From: Magallana gigas
Taxonomy: Eukaryota
DNA length: 64,000 bases
Assembly (NCBI RefSeq): GCF_963853765.1
Contig: NC_088857.1
Coordinates: 29,202,001-29,266,000 of the forward strand
Direction of reading: 5' to 3'
In this document: one piece after another, positions 3,759 through 59,350 of the stretch
Numbering within the stretch: the stretch's first letter is position 1
Layout of the letters: each line of letters begins with the position of its first letter
Made by a program: the position numbers and the translations under genes
The notes under the pieces: model-generated
Told to the model about the DNA's origin: nothing
What the model saw: the letters and a program-made list of their open reading frames with translations, nothing else
The model's database searches: none

Positions 3759-3965
3759 CTAAAGAGGCTGATGTGATATCTTTTAACCTTGTTTCCATCG
3801 TCATTGCAAATGCTGAATACGTGGAATGTGTTGCTTGTTCCTGTGTTGTTAAGTATTCAATTTGTTTCTTTTGGGCTGTAATTTGCACCGGTAGGCTCGA
3901 TTTGGATGTCGAAATATTATTTGTAGCTGCTGTTGTTATTCTCCTTCTAATACTAGACCGCCTTT
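3759..3965 (-). CDS. Gene D stalk exon d (Thr/Ser-rich)
   Basis: ttttcttgtattgaaattag|AA AGG...TCT TTA G|gtacat; 207 nt, phase 1-1; encodes RRSSIRRRITTAATNNISTSK...DITSASL. An alternative in-frame acceptor exists at 3992. Confidence 0.6.
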
Positions 3966-4303
3966 CTAATTTCAATACAAGAAAAGTTATAACTAGATTT
4001 ATTATGAAGCATTGTTTAAGCAGATTCTGGAAATTAAAATATATGTAATTCTTCGCACTAAAACAATATCACTGTTTAGTAAATTGTAAAAATGTGCTTT
4101 AATAAATAACAATACAATCACATGCCATTGTATAAATTTACACATATGTTTGTCAAGTTTTAATTCAACCACGTGCCAATATATATCTGTTACTGTAAAG
4201 TTTAATATATGGTTTTAATATATCTTTTTTTAATATTCATATACGTGTTACGCTACATTTGATCGTAATATAGATTATAAAGTAAAATAAATGACACATA
4301 TAC

Positions 4304-4375
4304 TACATGCTGTAGAAGTTAATATTGCTGGAAAAGGTGTTCTCGTTGTCGATGTTGTTATTCGTTCATTAAGCA
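4304..4375 (-). CDS. Gene D stalk exon c
   Basis: ttttttaacaag|TG CTT AAT GAA CGA ATA ACA ACA TCG ACA ACG; 72 nt (or 69 nt), phase 1-1. Its start resembles the gene C exon at 28307. Confidence 0.55.
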
Positions 4376-55400: not shown

Positions 55401-57905
55401 TTTATTAAACTCTTGTCCACGCATTTCCTCAAAAACGAGAAAAGATAGAAAGCTGAAATTTTCAGGAATGATAGAGGACATGAACGCCTAGCCTCACGAG
55501 GAAAATCATTGTCCGGAAATTCCGAGTACGGAAGCTAGCCGGGGTCAAGATATAGAACACACTTTCGACGTGTTTTCATTGTCCACATATCTATTTTAAG
55601 CAAAAAAAGATAGAAAACTAAACATTTCAGGAATGATAGAGAAGATAATAGTCTAGCATCACAAGAAAAATCATTGTCTGGAAATTCCGAGTACGGAAGC
55701 TAAATTTTAAAACTCATATTAAATGTGTTATAATGACCTCAGACTAATTTTAAAACATAATAAAATAAATAAGTTGCACTTTAATTCTGCGTCTAATAAG
55801 CTCTTTTTCAAATTGATGGGATAAAATTTAAATTCTTGAAAATTTTAAATTTAATTTAATCGTAATAAAATGACCTCAGACTAATTTTAAAACATAATAT
55901 CTAAGTTGCGCTTACAATTCTGTGTATAATGAAATCTTTCTCGAATAAATTGGATGAAATTTAATTATTTTTAAAATTTAATTAAATCGTGTTAAAATGA
56001 CCTCAGACTAATTTTAAAACATGATGTCCAAGTTGCGCTTACAATTCTGCGTCTGAAGACATCTTTTTCGAATTGATTGGATAAATTTTAAATTTTTAAA
56101 ATAAATTAAATCGTAAAAAATTGACCTCAGACTAATTTTTATATGTGATATTTAAGTTGTGCTTACACTTCTGCCTCTATTGACTTCTTTCTCGAATTGA
56201 TTCGCTGATTTTTATTTTTTTTGAAAATTTAGAATTTTAATTAATTAAATCGTGTTAAAATGACCTCAGATTAATTAAAAAACAAAATATTAAGGTTACG
56301 CTTAGAATTCTGCGTCTGATGACATCTTCCTCGAAATAATTGGAAGAATGTTAAATTTTTTAAAAAATTAAAACTCATTTAAATCGCATTAAAATGACCT
56401 CAGACTAATTTAAAAACAATATATCTAAGTTGCGCTTACAATTTTGCGTCTGATGACATCTTTTTCAAATTGATTGGATGAATTTTAAATTTTTAAAAAA
56501 ATTTAAACTTATTTAAATTGTGTTAAAATGACCTCAGACTAATTTTCAAACATGATATCTAAAATGCGCGTACAATTGTGCGTCTGATGACATCTTTTTC
56601 GAATTGATTGGATGAATTTTAAATTTTTCAAAACTTTTAAACTCATTTAAATCGTGTTAAATGACCTCTGACTAATTTTCAAACATAATATCTAAATTAC
56701 ACTTACAATTTTGCGTCTAATAACATCTATTTCAAATTGATTGGATGAATTAAAAAAAAATTGAAAATTTTGATTTAATTAATTGTGTTAAAATGGCCTC
56801 AGACTAATTTTCAAACATACTATCTAAGTAGCGTTTACAATTCTGCGTCTGATGACATCTTTCTTGAATTGATTGGATGAATTTATTTTTTTTTAAATTT
56901 CAAATTTAATTAAATCGTGTTAAAATTACCTTAGACTAATTTTCAAACATGCTATCTAAGTAGCGCTTACAATATTGCGTCTAATGACATCTATATCGAA
57001 TTGATTGGATGAATTTTAAATTTGGTCAATAATCTCATCTCGCTAGCATCTGATGAAAAATTGGACGGAAGACCCACTCGTTGCTCGCAACGAGATTGCG
57101 TCTAGTTATTATTATTATTCCATAAATTACTGACTTTTAACGCTTAGATGAAATCCTGTGCCTTCGTCCCTATCGTCTGATATAAATGATATTTTGACTC
57201 CCAATCCAGTTGTTTCTATATGGTTCTTTTTTCCTTCGCAGCTGTGAAACAAAACACGGGATGAACTGAATTCTTCTATCTAAAGAAAAATTTTGGATAA
57301 GTGAACGGAAAATGTCATGGTAGTTTGTGCATATCTACAAGGCTCAGACATGGAAATATCTGGAATTTCAATTTTTCGAATGAAGTATACAATAATTAAA
57401 AACTAACTTTCATGATAAATTTTACCAAATGGCTTTAATGTGTTACATGCAGCCCTTTACCTTCAGATAGTCGGTGCAACTACCACTAGTTGTGTAGATG
57501 GAAAGCTGAGTTATTAGGATAGACAGTCCAGAAGAACATTGCGGTTCTGAGACTAAAACAGTCCAAGAAAAGTTACTGTTTGGCAAATAACGATTTTCTT
57601 TGTTACGGGTAGAGGAAACGTATAGTTCATTACAGTTGTCAAGTATCTTCGAATAAGGGTCGTAGAATTCACCAGCTGCTAAATATACAATTAAAAAAAC
57701 CAACAATGCATAGTAATAAATATACTATATCACCCAAAGATACTAGTAATTTAAATGTTTTGTAAAGACATCAAAATCTGTAGCATGCTCCATATCGATT
57801 CATTTAAATACCGGCTGAAATTACACAATTTTCTAAATGCTCATGAAATAACTTACCCGAATGCTTACAAACAATCATCACAAGAATAAGAATTGTCGAT
57901 TCCAT
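49148..57905 (-). CDS. Gene A: CUB receptor paralog, signal peptide - CUB - stalk - TM - tail (341 aa if one extra A at 55030-55034 is removed)
   Basis: Exons 57905-57857, 57678-57461, 57279-57135, 55038-54765 (274 nt, 1 nt too long), 54620-54539 and 49406-49148. All other junctions are phase-compatible. Confidence 0.72.
52306..53070 (+). mobile_element. HINE-like element, 5' part, with ~133-bp repeats
   Basis: TTATTAAGTCTCCC...GAAGACTT inverted motif, (TTC/TTA)n tract, then repeats of the 19169-19606 family. Confidence 0.7.
53071..54044 (-). mobile_element. DINE-1/pearl-like HINE in opposite orientation with ~160-bp repeats
   Basis: Terminal palindrome TATACCCGAACTTTCT-TT-AGAAAGTGCGGGTATA (54008-54041), (GACG)n at 53975-53991, and tandem units AAATTTTCAAAACCTTACTGCACATCTATAG... 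Confidence 0.7.
54539..54620 (-). CDS. Gene A transmembrane exon
   Basis: tttttatttcag|TT GTG ATT...AAC AG|gtgagt; VILTSFLAGIICTSVFVAIAILIRNN. Confidence 0.85.
55177..57106 (+). mobile_element. Helentron-associated element (HINE) carrying satellite arrays
   Basis: Subterminal inverted motifs GGGTCTT (55184) and AAGACCC (57069), 3' hairpin CTCGTTGC-TC-GCAACGAG then CTAG; two ~165-bp units (55440-55702) and about ten 124-139-bp units (55715-57020). Confidence 0.85.
57135..57279 (-). CDS. Gene A CUB domain exon 2
   Basis: ttttctttag|ATA GAA...GTT AAA A|gtcagt; ...CEGK...VKISFISDDRDEGTGFHLSVK. Confidence 0.88.
57461..57678 (-). CDS. Gene A CUB domain exon 1
   Basis: 218 nt, phase 1-0; RYLPNSNFSWTV and SCTDYLK|gtaaag. 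Confidence 0.88.
57857..57905 (-). CDS. Gene A signal-peptide exon
   Basis: ATG GAA TCG...CAT TCG G|gtaagt; MESTILILVMIVCKHS. Confidence 0.8.
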
Positions 57906-58559
57906 AAATGTTGTGTATATCAATATCTAATGTTCAAAACAAATCTGTCAAAATTTTTTAAAGTATGTGGTCGCTATACATTTCTCCGTGTGTCAAAATA
58001 TTTCCCGTTTTTTAACGTATGACGCTTATTTAGATCAAAGGATATGATAGATATATTAAAGGGAAATGAAAGATACAGAAATACACATGTTCTATATGGA
58101 AAATAGAGGTGTCATCATTTATCATTTATTTCCTCATTTTATAATATTTTCAAGAACGTACTTGAAAGTTCTAAGTTAACATAACATCAACTCGCCTTGT
58201 ATCCTTATGAATTGCATTTAAATTGACGATATCTTCTGTAAACTATCAAGTAAATGTGTCTTTTATGCACTGTGTTTCTTTAATTTCAATTGAAATTTAC
58301 TTCTGTTGGAACTCTGAAAGCTATACACGCCCTAAAGATAACACGTATTGCTTTAAAACATAAAATTCGTTAATTGATAAAAAGTTAAGTGGTATGAAAT
58401 AATACTTTCCACATAGTATTGCAAAATAATTCATTCTAAAATAAAATAAAATAATAAGTATAGTTTGTAATCAGGAATTTGATACTTTGTCATGAATATT
58501 GATGAAAGAAGAGAAAAACAACTTCATCGCGGGGAATTTATCCTTAATTTTTCATTTTA

Positions 58560-59350
58560 CGTTGTTGTTTTTTTCTAATCGTTTCTTTTCATAAAAACAT
58601 AAAAAAAATCGATATTTTCAGGAAATCTGAAAAAAATTGGATGATTGTGAAAACCATATGCAGACGTTTTCCAAGAAAAACGTTTTTAACCATATGTTAA
58701 CGTTATTCATAGAGATAGACATACATGTATCAATAGAATTTATAAATAATAAGTAAAGCTTTTTACTTGTGGATTTTTTATTTATCGTTTTCTTTGTTTC
58801 AAATTAAAACAATTAATTTAAGCTTTGTATTTATCTTTTATGCCAGTTTTGATAAGAAAAAGGTAAAACAAAAGTTGACATTTTTATAACTTTAAAATAC
58901 TTACCTATTACTCTGTATTAAAACCACAACTGAAACGGCAATAGATGTGCATTTAACACCAGCAATATTGCTAGTCAAAATTAAATTCACAACTGAAATA
59001 AAGAAAATATATTAGAATATAAAGAGTGTATAGAGACAACAGCAGCGTGTAGAAATCCTGTGACTGTGTTTGCCTTCAATTTTATCAAAAGATATTGGAA
59101 ATAATATGAATACTGATATCTTTGAAAGCTAAATCTTCTTTGTGCCATAGTTTTGTGTGCTTTCTTTTTGTAAAAACTTTCGAGTTATATCTACAACAAT
59201 AAAACGTTGGGTTATATCTACATGTTCTATTTTGATGAAAACAGCCAACCAATTTGTCTACTACACGTTCATGATACCGTCAACAGTACAAAATTCTTCC
59301 GCATCTAAATTACCCATAAAAACTTTTTTATTACTAATTAGACTTTGTCC
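58560..59350 (-). pseudogene. Orphan duplicate of the gene A TM exon (58992-58905) with flanking intron homology and a frameshifted upstream exon
   Basis: The exon VNLILTSNIAGVKCTSIAVSVVVLIQSN keeps both splice sites. 58560-59130 is colinear with 54280-54790. Confidence 0.65.

Follow-up and report, generated by a model that had tools for sequence, protein, structure and literature searches.

Candidate type I membrane glycoproteins with a CUB head, a Ser/Thr-rich stalk and a tyrosine-motif tail in a tandem gene array of the oyster Magallana gigas

Described CUB and tyrosine-tail proteins compared with the oyster locus

In vertebrates, Src-family kinases phosphorylate tail tyrosines of CDCP1, which then dock SH2/C2 partners. 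CDCP1 resembles the oyster family in being a type I membrane glycoprotein whose ectodomain is of the CUB type and whose tail is disordered, and it is the nearest functional analogy to the mechanism proposed below, but its ectodomain contains three CUB-like domains without a mucin stalk, it lacks the intramembrane Glu, and its tail motifs are unrelated. We found no sequence relation between the two beyond the CUB fold, and neither the fold search nor the sequence search placed CDCP1 among its best matches. The closest solved folds to the modelled CUB of the oyster protein P0164, as ranked by Foldseek, were the CUB_C domain of TSG-6 and the a1/a2 domains of neuropilins (TM-score 0.74-0.78 by target, 20-25% identity), which are ligand-binding CUBs with a Ca2+ site. 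Neuropilins differ in their added FV/VIII and MAM domains and short PDZ-binding tail, and TSG-6 is secreted. As compared with these domains, the oyster CUBs probably lack the first disulfide and appear to carry Asn in place of the Asp that acts as third Ca2+ ligand. Among solved structures, cubilin matched best in sequence (E 1.3e-20 with the Ostrea member P0001); however, it has 27 CUBs and no transmembrane (TM) segment, whereas an oyster protein has one or two CUBs and continues into a mucin stalk, a TM helix and a tail.

MUC1-type mucins and platelet GPIb alpha, which appear among automatic RefSeq names, share with the family a Ser/Thr-rich juxtamembrane stalk, one TM helix and a short tyrosine tail. 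We found no SEA domain, leucine-rich repeats or tandem-repeat mucin core in the oyster family, and these names arise from low-complexity similarity only. The ITAM chains DAP12, FcR gamma and CD3 zeta likewise combine an acidic residue in the TM helix with two Yxx[IL] motifs in the tail, but their motif spacer is 6-12 residues, as against 13-14 here, and they have almost no ectodomain in place of a CUB head and stalk. We do not claim homology to these chains. Feature-based look-alikes, which are leads only, included SCIMP and LIME1, both of them tyrosine-phosphorylated adaptors, as well as poxvirus A36.

Gene copies, relic exons and an embedded lectin in the window

The window, the whole 64,000-nucleotide stretch analysed (C5:29,202,001-29,266,000 of Magallana (Crassostrea) gigas), contains three family genes, g1, g2 and g3, all on the minus strand. 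Each begins with a signal-peptide exon of 49-52 nt ending in phase 1 and a CUB domain split into exons of 215-218 nt (CUBa) and 145-157 nt (CUBb). Towards the 3' end, the family plan continues with Ser/Thr stalk exons in phase 1-1, a TM exon in phase 1-2 and a single tail exon. These coordinates confirm the original prediction of at least three minus-strand paralogues built on one exon grammar. It had also supposed that one gene is intact and the rest broken; g3 is indeed truncated and the relics are frameshifted or orphaned, but an open frame is present in both g2 and g1.

The frame of g2 (35468-25704) is open over 553 codons, and its splice sites are intact. The gene comprises a signal-peptide exon (35417-35468, 52 nt, phase 1, donor GTGAGT), CUBa (34225-34439, 215 nt), CUBb (29069-29225, 157 nt), a Ser/Thr/Lys-rich first stalk exon (27825-28307, 483 nt) and a second stalk exon (27153-27485, 333 nt), both phase 1-1, a TM exon with a Glu within the helix (26799-26883, 85 nt, phase 1-2), and a tail exon of 111 codons (25704-26037; stop at 25703-25701) carrying YDEI, SPYIEL and GVYDTTFKRR. 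Its four 3' junctions, all GT..AG, were confirmed by RNA contigs joined exactly at 29069|28307, 27825|27485, 27153|26883 and 26799|26037. One contig matched g2 stalk exon 2 with 0 mismatches over 227 nt, joining the stalk to the TM and tail exons. In one raw-read polyA run, of which about 1% was sampled, no reads fell on g2 exons, and none of the annotated proteins found matched g2.

At the same time, g2 bears signs of decay, namely a weakened CUBa donor (GTTATT, as compared with GTAATT in paralogues, the change being at +3), replacement by Ala of the family's near-invariant Asp of CEDYL in CUBa, and two private insertions. One insertion, between CUBa and CUBb, is a 4.9-kb DIRS-like retroelement on the minus strand (29272-34133), which has reverse transcriptase, a Dam-like methyltransferase, inverted terminal repeats and broken ORFs, and is missing from both close paralogues. 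The other is a 565-bp repeat in the CUBb-stalk intron (28363-28928), which shows high RNA depth on two strands and is missing from paralogues.

The predicted g1 gene (57905-49151), with an open frame of 321 codons and intact splice sites, starts with a signal-peptide exon (57857-57905, 49 nt, ending in phase 1, donor GTAAGT) that matches the N-terminus of P0151 and P0082. This is followed by CUBa (57461-57678, 218 nt), CUBb (57135-57279, 145 nt, ending in phase 1), a stalk exon (54765-54977, 213 nt, phase 1-1) and a TM exon (54539-54620, 82 nt, phase 1-2, donor GTGAGT). The tail exon (49151-49406, phase-2 acceptor; stop at 49150-49148), which contains NPY, NPNY and YDIL and shares 87% identity with the last P0151 exon, lies 5 kb downstream; the paralogue's penultimate exon is missing from g1, and the frame is nonetheless kept. 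A satellite array with a 134-nt unit occupies 55702-57023 of the CUBb-stalk intron, within a stretch (55184-57106) missing from the paralogue. No annotated protein identical to g1 was retrieved.

Only the 5' half of g3 (17672-13986) is present, comprising a signal-peptide exon (17624-17672, 49 nt, phase 1, donor GTAAGT), CUBa (15214-15431, 218 nt), CUBb (14444-14600, 157 nt) and a phase 1-1 stalk exon (13986-14081, 96 nt), whose boundaries are those of the homologous mRNA contig L024. No TM or tail exon follows the stalk within the window; full-length g3-type mRNA contigs with both are represented by L024 and L025. Minus-strand relics include the 3' part of a g2-type tail exon, broken by a frameshift (21093-21230), a degenerate g1-type TM exon retaining its splice sites (58905-58992), and three orphan stalk exons whose splice sites look usable at 3759-5414, one g3-type (5414-5301) and two g2-type (4375-4307 and 3965-3759), after which we found no TM or tail exon. 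The PAN-CTLD lectin gene that had been noticed between the copies, with a stop, is also on the minus strand (40549-42554), with exon 1 (42554-42278) encoding a signal and a PAN-like domain and two CTLD exons (41498-41322 and 40769-40549). The stop was upheld, as exon 1 carries a premature TAG at 42284-42282 where a 96%-identical paralogous exon has TCG.

Domain structure and family history

P0164 (RefSeq 'mucin-22-like', 562 aa), the closest annotated paralogue, has the same seven exons as g2, and in its fold model a disordered stalk joins the CUB head to the TM helix, behind which the tail is likewise disordered. This agrees with the predicted order of signal peptide, single CUB head, Ser/Thr-rich stalk, TM helix and tyrosine tail. 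The long stalk is presumably O-glycosylated. Searched exon by exon, the CUB halves of the window genes fell below the Pfam cut-off, and P0164 gave no Pfam match whatever. The CUB assignment for the window genes relies on relatives and the fold model. Pfam CUB scored above cut-off in P0001, P0005, P0026, P0082, P0119, P0151 and P0162; a family profile search matched long multi-CUB proteins with E values down to 1e-31; and phmmer with P0001 found cubilin, MASP-1, PCPE-1 and neuropilin-2. The CUB fold is shown for P0164 by its AF2 model, in which pLDDT is mostly 80-91 across the domain. As read from sequence, the family CUB keeps the second disulfide but not the first, and has a predicted acidic cluster where classical CUBs have their Ca2+/ligand site.

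The CUBa exons of g1, g2 and g3 are only 29-35% identical, as expected from the strong divergence noted originally, and the Cys before the conserved W is, as also noted, replaced in all three, where g2 has L, g3 has Y and g1 has F. This loss is not peculiar to the family, since other invertebrate multi-CUB proteins among the matches also lack this Cys. The original prediction had taken the family to be fast-evolving. On the CUB exons, pairwise dN/dS was 0.24-0.57 in old pairs and 0.5-1.0 in young ones, with a similar ratio in the tail. For g2 CUBa against its closest paralogues dN/dS was about 1; nowhere was it significantly above 1, and positive selection was not shown for the CUB. The introns of the CUB block share its extra divergence, which therefore reflects a mosaic history rather than faster protein evolution alone. 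The 3' backbone is homogenised and younger than the CUB block. In one transcript we found a CUB cassette that is missing from the reference.

The family tail is disordered, about 110 residues long, and has three conserved tyrosine motifs, N-V-Y-D-E/V-I, N-P-Y-x-E/D-L and G-V-Y-D-T-T-F-K-R-R, the last being the most conserved; most members keep a glutamate inside the TM helix. Tail and TM helix are conserved across the Magallana clusters and Ostrea, and the tail in Saccostrea too. With the spacer noted above, the tails depart from the canonical ITAM pattern, and an ITIM pattern occurs in the g2 lineage only. The tail motifs are also compatible with YxxPhi/NPxY sorting signals.

The family extends far beyond the window. 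Genome-wide, 36 CUBa-type exons were found at E<=0.001, in clusters on C5, C10 and C3. The number of CUB units is about 14 for C5, 7 for C10 and at least 12 for C3, where one gene shares the architecture and motifs of the window family. Relatives are present in Ostrea, where the copies form their own clade, and in Saccostrea. The 40.2-60k part of the window is a segmental duplication, and neighbouring copies carry stops and frameshifts; together with the pseudogenes and orphan exons, this is the picture of the tandem birth-and-death array envisaged at the outset. No named family had been recognised then, and none emerged here, as members bear only the automatic RefSeq names 'mucin-22-like' or 'uncharacterized', and literature searches found no paper on an oyster CUB-mucin family.

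Candidate function and alternative explanations

We tentatively propose, at somewhat less than even odds, that these proteins act as signalling receptors. The stalk would raise the CUB head over the cell coat, and there the head may capture an extracellular ligand; receptor clustering would then lead to phosphorylation of the tail tyrosines, which could dock SH2-domain proteins. Immune recognition, as originally suggested, would be one possible setting. An endocytic, scavenger or adhesion glycoprotein is unlikely; in that case YDEI and YKEL (NPNY and YDIL in g1) would serve as YxxPhi/NPxY signals for clathrin adaptors, while the CUB head takes cargo or makes cell-matrix contact, as in cubilin/amnionless and LRP-type CUB receptors. 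YxxPhi patterns are found in every member and NPxY in the g1 type, with acidic stretches adjoining; cubilin is the best-matching solved structure; and feature-based look-alikes of the TM helix and tail include MUC1 and syndecan-type tails (scores <0.9, leads only). However, GVYDTTFKRR is not a YxxPhi signal, and the conserved intramembrane Glu is left unexplained. A role outside immunity appears improbable, whether in gamete or larval-settlement recognition, in mantle/shell-matrix interaction or as a membrane-tethered mucosal barrier protein. CUB domains do serve in spermadhesins, which act at fertilisation, and the fold matches include PDB 1spp; reproductive proteins, too, typically form tandem families that evolve fast; and CUB-domain proteins are reportedly treated in a paper on the coral skeletal proteome. 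Against this, nothing found here, with RNA runs of unstated tissue, indicates gonad or mantle expression.

It is also rather doubtful, though less so than either of these alternatives, that all three window copies are dead or dying and that only paralogues outside still function, namely P0164 (C5:29.304-29.309 Mb), a gene at 29.096-29.111 Mb and the gene of P0151 (29.331-29.342 Mb). The intron insertions, weak donor, Asp-to-Ala change and CUBa dN/dS of about 1 in g2, the lost penultimate exon and satellite insertion in g1, and the missing TM and tail exons of g3 would fit such a view, as would, weakly, the failure to retrieve annotated proteins identical to g2 or g1. Yet the g2 and g1 frames are fully open with intact splice sites, and a spliced RNA contig matches g2 exactly.

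Whatever the fate of single copies, the family members are genuine, transcribed genes with an oyster-only range. With a probability of about 0.6, we regard the window as a slice of an Ostreidae-lineage multigene family of type I membrane glycoproteins, which would have grown by tandem and segmental duplication and decayed by truncation, insertion and point mutation.

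Exon plan, integrity and transcription of the genes in the window

Stop-to-stop segments and splice-site reading identified three split CUB domains on the minus strand of the window, which is AT-rich (~31% GC), free of N runs and devoid of anything resembling human sequence. The genes that carry them, g1 (57905-49151), g2 (35468-25704) and g3 (17672-13986), all begin with a signal exon of 49-52 nt that ends in phase 1 at a strong donor (3/3), and in each of them the CUB domain is divided between an exon of 215-218 nt (CUBa, phase 1 to 0) and an exon of 145-157 nt (CUBb, phase 0 to 1). 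The downstream plan consists of Ser/Thr-rich stalk exons in phase 1-1, a transmembrane (TM) exon in phase 1-2 and a single cytoplasmic tail exon. This reading bore out the exon grammar that the original prediction had assigned to at least three minus-strand paralogues. The accompanying claim that one gene is intact and the rest are broken held only in part, as per-exon translation yielded two open frames: the exons of g2 sum to 1659 nt (553 codons) and those of g1 to 963 nt (321 codons), both totals being multiples of three and every exon being stop-free. As compared with its annotated paralogue P0151 (C5:29,331,054-29,341,854), g1 is 72-87% identical and is missing the penultimate exon, the frame being kept despite this loss because the phase-2 donor of the TM exon fits the phase-2 acceptor of the last exon; g1 is a diverged subtype.

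The part of the claim that stood concerns g3 and a set of relic exons. g3 consists of the signal exon, the CUB domain and one stalk exon, whose boundaries were confirmed by homologous mRNA, and no later stalk, TM or tail homologues were found downstream of it in the window. The relics, all on the minus strand, are three stalk exons at 5.4-3.8k, recognized by homology and splice sites, a frameshifted tail piece at 21.1k with homology to g2-type tails, and, at 58.9k, a TM exon of the g1 type that has degenerated. Between the last exon of g3 and the orphan stalk exons lie two 42-nt minisatellites of related sequence (7946-8174 and 12452-12706), which flank a stretch rich in (CT)n/(GA)n microsatellites (8.8-11.3k). 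Non-coding tandem duplications of two to three perfect or near-perfect copies were also observed, of 87 nt (3572-3747), 170 nt (16747-17089) and 162 nt (53076-53522).

Logan contigs from three runs, belonging to three studies, were aligned to window positions 25300-29300. Minus-strand GT..AG joints of g2 fell exactly at 29069 to 28307, 27825 to 27485, 27153 to 26883 and 26799 to 26037, so that four 3' junctions were seen spliced in RNA contigs, the lack of any spliced reads across the predicted junctions having been named originally as grounds for rejection. A 330-nt contig matched 227 nt of g2 stalk exon 2 with 0 mismatches, then spanned the TM exon in full and reached the tail exon; because of this exact match, we consider g2 itself, beyond its paralogues alone, to be transcribed and spliced. 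In a contig crossing the joint between CUBb and stalk exon 1, the stalk part was identical to g2 and CUBb differed at 16/141 positions, and this contig could derive from an allele, a paralogue or a chimera. The g2 exons had zero coverage in the ~1% that was sampled of one raw polyA run (X20).

CUB heads and their oyster relatives

When exons were scanned singly, g3 CUBa and g1 CUBb scored 15.3 and 12.8 bits, respectively, against Pfam PF00431, as compared with a gathering score of 21.4, and the window was not among the best 150 matches of a whole-genome Pfam CUB scan. Relatives scored above the gathering value (P0162, 31.9; P0026, 38.8; P0151, 27.5; P0001, 85.1 bits). Pfam support for the predicted domain was found above cut-off in 7 of the oyster single- or double-CUB relatives retrieved, the window's own exons staying sub-threshold. 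P0164, the nearest annotated g2 paralogue, and P0163, a g3-type transcript-derived ORF, gave no Pfam match at all, which accounts for the name 'mucin-22-like' given to P0164. A CUBa profile made from 19 exons of the window and its neighbourhood, searched against 1.84 billion representatives, matched long multi-CUB proteins, with E values as low as 1e-31, together with a limited group of oyster single- or double-CUB proteins, and phmmer of P0001 reached cubilin at E 1.3e-20.

The evidence on fold comes from the AF2 model of P0164, which shares 72-83% identity with the g2 CUB exons, and not from the window's own product. In the model, a beta-sandwich head (pLDDT mostly 80-91 over the CUB residues) precedes a disordered region (150-417), a helix (415-447) and a tail that is again disordered. 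Foldseek matched the head at probability 1.00 to the CUB domains of TSG-6 (CUB_C), neuropilin (a1/a2), PCPE-1, MASP and C1r, so that the predicted order of CUB fold, disordered stalk, helix and disordered tail was recovered in this paralogue. On modelled fold and transitive sequence evidence, we conclude that the head belongs to the CUB superfamily.

The three CUBa exons of the window share 29-35% identity, in keeping with the strong divergence originally described. The loss of the Cys before the W, also described then, was seen in the window genes and in 19/19 aligned family CUBa exons, where Y, L or F takes its place, and the four-Cys/two-disulfide arrangement does not hold. The second Cys pair (C-E-D-Y-L and Q-C-G) is kept in the aligned family exons. 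Classical CUBs devoid of the first Cys pair exist, namely CUB1 of C1r/C1s/MASP, and the lost pair therefore does not exclude CUB membership. Alignment with the ligand triad of Ca2+-binding CUBs (Glu/Asp, Asp and Asp) showed that position 1 is acidic, namely the Asp of M-D-I in the Magallana members and a Glu in the second CUB of Ostrea, that the Asp of C-E-D-Y-L is kept in the family, and that the third site reads S-N-x-D; at the second position of the triad, where this Asp is near-invariant, g2 has Ala.

The relatives retrieved are scattered under several database names. P0082 and P0151-P0154 (M. angulata, M. gigas) are 'uncharacterized protein', as is P0119 from Saccostrea ('uncharacterized'), and P0026, P0157-P0161 and P0001 from Ostrea edulis appear as 'platelet glycoprotein Ib alpha chain-like', 'mucin-2-like', 'mucin-5AC-like' or 'uncharacterized'; P0005, P0162 and P0163 are transcript-derived ORFs without a database name. 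P0164 (M. gigas, 562 aa) maps to C5:29,303,929-29,308,888, 38 kb right of the window, and its seven exons correspond to those of g2. In a tail word search, the Ostrea tail matched Ostrea proteins only, and the Crassostrea tail matched P0164.

At E<=0.001, the profile search placed 36 exons of the CUBa type in the genome: 14 at C5, 29.10-29.34 Mb, two of which belong to the g1 type, 7 at C10, 5.65-5.70 Mb, in genes with two CUBs, at least 12 at C3, 11.43-11.80 Mb, and a few elsewhere. One C3 gene was read, and its plan, TM and tail motifs match the rest of the family. In the C10 cluster (L010-L012 and L021-L023; C10:5.65-5.71 Mb), two CUBa types alternate, which matches the ORF P0005 with its two adjacent CUBs; a single TM and tail pair was seen there, at C10:5706404-5706924. 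Two g3-type CUB units 7.6 kb apart on C5 (L017:1554-1769 and L017:9165-9380; C5:29173554 and 29181165) have identical CUB exons, which points either to tandem duplication in the very recent past or to a duplication in the assembly. A tree of CUBa exons, built on a short alignment and with many weak forks, placed the Ostrea copies in a group of their own, apart from the Magallana groups, suggesting that the expansions are lineage-specific. Neighbouring copies carry stops or frameshifts or have lost their 3' ends. Together with the clustering of the 36 exons and a segmental duplication, these broken copies agree with the birth-and-death tandem array that had been proposed.

Insertions, duplication and mosaic history

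g2 is collinear with two close paralogues, copies A and B, across exons and introns at 80-98% identity, and four features are private to it. One is a DIRS-like element of 4.9 kb that lies within the CUB intron (29272-34133), in the same orientation as g2, with inverted terminal repeats at 29269-29677 and 34020-34091. Its RVT_1 and Dam-like methyltransferase lie just under the Pfam cut-offs and its ORFs are broken across frames, the presumed recombinase ORFs giving no Pfam match; about 220 nt of ancestral intron have apparently been replaced. Another is a 565-bp repeat (28363-28928) with a very high two-stranded depth of RNA contigs and many loose ends, which indicates a dispersed, transcribed repeat. 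The third is the CUBa donor, which reads GTTATT in g2 and GTAATT in copies A and B, and the fourth is the Ala at the near-invariant Asp position of the CUB.

Window positions 40239-60000, which include the lectin gene and g1, are collinear with C5:29316424-29344130 at 67-89% identity, and this 40.2-60k block is a segmental duplication. A 6.9-kb stretch of the paralogue (C5:29333129-29340020), with the penultimate tail exon, is missing between the collinear blocks of the window, and the window copy has gained a satellite (55702-57023). Open frames resembling retroelement remnants, without a Pfam match, were noted at 45180-47277 and are common to the paralogous block (C5:29322258-29327144); since the insertion is shared, it predates the duplication. 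The lectin gene (42554-40549) consists of a signal and PAN-like exon followed by two putative CTLD exons. Single-exon Pfam scans of it gave no match above cut-off, with PAN_3 sub-threshold; the first CTLD exon matches the CTLDs of mannose receptor, PLA2 receptor and asialoglycoprotein receptor (E 1.3e-5), and the second matches nothing. The stop that had been noted in this lectin is a TAG at 42284-42282, which replaces the TCG read in the paralogue at C5:29.319 Mb.

The suggested comparison of rates did not reveal positive selection. Among old pairs, pairwise dN/dS in the CUB exons ranged from 0.24 to 0.57, and among young pairs from 0.5 to 1.0, as compared with ~0.55 in the tail, and no pair was clearly above 1; the excess of 7 non-synonymous over 0 synonymous changes between two copies right of the window was not significant (estimated P ~0.15). 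Divergence between g2 and copies A and B was uneven along the gene: identity is 82-88% across CUBa, CUBb and the next two introns, and 90-99% in the signal exon, in intron 1 and throughout the part that starts with stalk exon 2. Since dS (0.26 in the CUB as compared with 0.08-0.11 in the tail) and intron divergence both exceed the flanking or tail values, the CUB block is older than its flanks, and faster protein evolution alone was rejected as an explanation on the same grounds. The pattern fits a backbone homogenised by gene conversion or unequal exchange, or an exchange of cassettes.

A similar contrast was found in L025, the full-length mRNA contig of P0163 (run SRR15032738). Over ~1.35 kb, its 3' exons share 99.3-99.9% identity with C5:29.096-29.102 Mb, in the gene at C5:29.096-29.111 Mb, the 87-nt TM exon being 96.6% identical, and its CUB exons (L025:75-560) reach at best 90% for CUBa and at most 81% for CUBb in the whole assembly (79-90% overall). 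This would mean either that other haplotypes carry very different heads or that L025 comes from a non-reference paralogue. A non-reference CUB is needed even if L025 is a k-mer assembly chimera.

Conserved tail motifs, candidate roles and meaning

The tails of Magallana (C5, C10, C3) align with those of Ostrea and Saccostrea at N-V-Y-D-E/V-I, an acidic run, N-P-Y-x-E/D-L, P-E-G-V-Y-D-T-T-F-K-R-R and the C-terminal T-F-S-T-F-K-G, and the g1 tail (N-P-Y-R-D-N-P-N-Y-D-I-L) resembles the tail core of the other members. A Glu within the TM helix (G-L-x-V-L-E-V) is kept in the g2 and g3 types, C10, C3 and Ostrea (read at window 26799-26883, P0164 418-447, L029:4058-4246 and L023:6380-6499) and is missing in the g1 type and the Saccostrea fragment. 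The ITAM pattern (Yxx[LI] x(6-12) Yxx[LI]) was rejected, as the spacer is 13-14 residues in C5 and Ostrea; it fits only in the C10 copy, through an additional tyrosine. A conserved ITIM ([SIVL]xYxx[IVL]) was likewise rejected, S-P-Y-I/K-E-L being confined to g2 and P0164 and the others having N at -2.

Named identities fared no better. A MUC1-type membrane mucin is contradicted by the absence of SEA, CUB being the only Pfam domain, and by stalk exons without a coding tandem array, and platelet GPIb alpha, the automatic RefSeq name of Ostrea members, by the absence of leucine-rich repeats, with CUB alone found by Pfam in P0026. P0112 and P0121, other CUB-TM proteins among the matches, have PPxY tails and canonical cysteines and belong to a different family. 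Feature look-alikes of the TM and tail (MUC1 tails, syndecan, SCIMP, LIME1 and poxvirus A36) all scored <0.9 and serve as leads only. No paper on these genes was found in the literature by domain, automatic name, identifiers or run numbers. The whole protein lies outside every named family that could be found, the original prediction likewise having recognized none, and CDCP1 is its nearest functional analogy. RefSeq already lists the genes of the intact paralogues as predictions, and the ORFs as such are not new; the novelty lies in the family, with the architecture and motifs that its members conserve and the mosaic way in which it evolved.

We prefer the hypothesis that these proteins are cell-surface receptors and give the following mechanism a probability of roughly 40%. 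An O-glycosylated stalk would raise the CUB head, which would bind an extracellular ligand, perhaps via the acidic cluster that it keeps where classical CUBs have their Ca2+ site; tail tyrosines would then be phosphorylated and would dock SH2 proteins. The optimal ligand of Src-family SH2 domains is pY-E-E-I and that of Nck is pY-D-x-V, ligands that we take the tail motifs Y-D-E-I and Y-D-T-T to resemble. The same motifs would be sorting signals if the proteins had an endocytic or adhesion role, which we consider unlikely, and a role outside immunity seems improbable. For the window only, it is somewhat unlikely that all three copies are decaying duplicates, a reading in line with the partial g3 and at odds with two open frames and spliced g2 RNA.

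A more specific and decidedly speculative version of the receptor hypothesis is that oysters have an immunoreceptor system of their own, with these proteins as its CUB-headed signalling chains. The TM Glu would pair with a basic residue in the TM of a partner receptor, as in DAP12, FcR gamma and CD3, and the ITAM-like tail, YD[EV]I followed after 13-14 residues by YxEL, plus GVYDTT, would bring in adaptors or SH2 kinases. Paralogues and haplotypes would differ strongly in their CUB cassettes over a homogenised 3' backbone, the heads forming a polymorphic recognition repertoire; this last element is suggested by L025, in which a CUB 10-21% off anything in the reference is joined to 3' exons of 96.6-99.9% identity.

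If these are ordinary adhesion or endocytic glycoproteins, the result is useful annotation and nothing beyond. With at least 33 CUB cassettes spread over three clusters, the family is expressed and has conserved TM and tail motifs, and it is hidden under misleading 'mucin-like' names, in part since the CUB of several members escapes Pfam. Ligand screens could start from its defined head and mutagenesis from its three conserved tyrosines and one intramembrane Glu, and the contrast of divergent heads and a homogenised backbone can be resolved by long-read pangenomes. Oysters live amid abundant microbes and suffer mass mortalities from OsHV-1 and Vibrio and, to our knowledge, have no antibodies. 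Large lineage-specific receptor families of oysters are prime candidates for the recognition of such threats and for resistance breeding.
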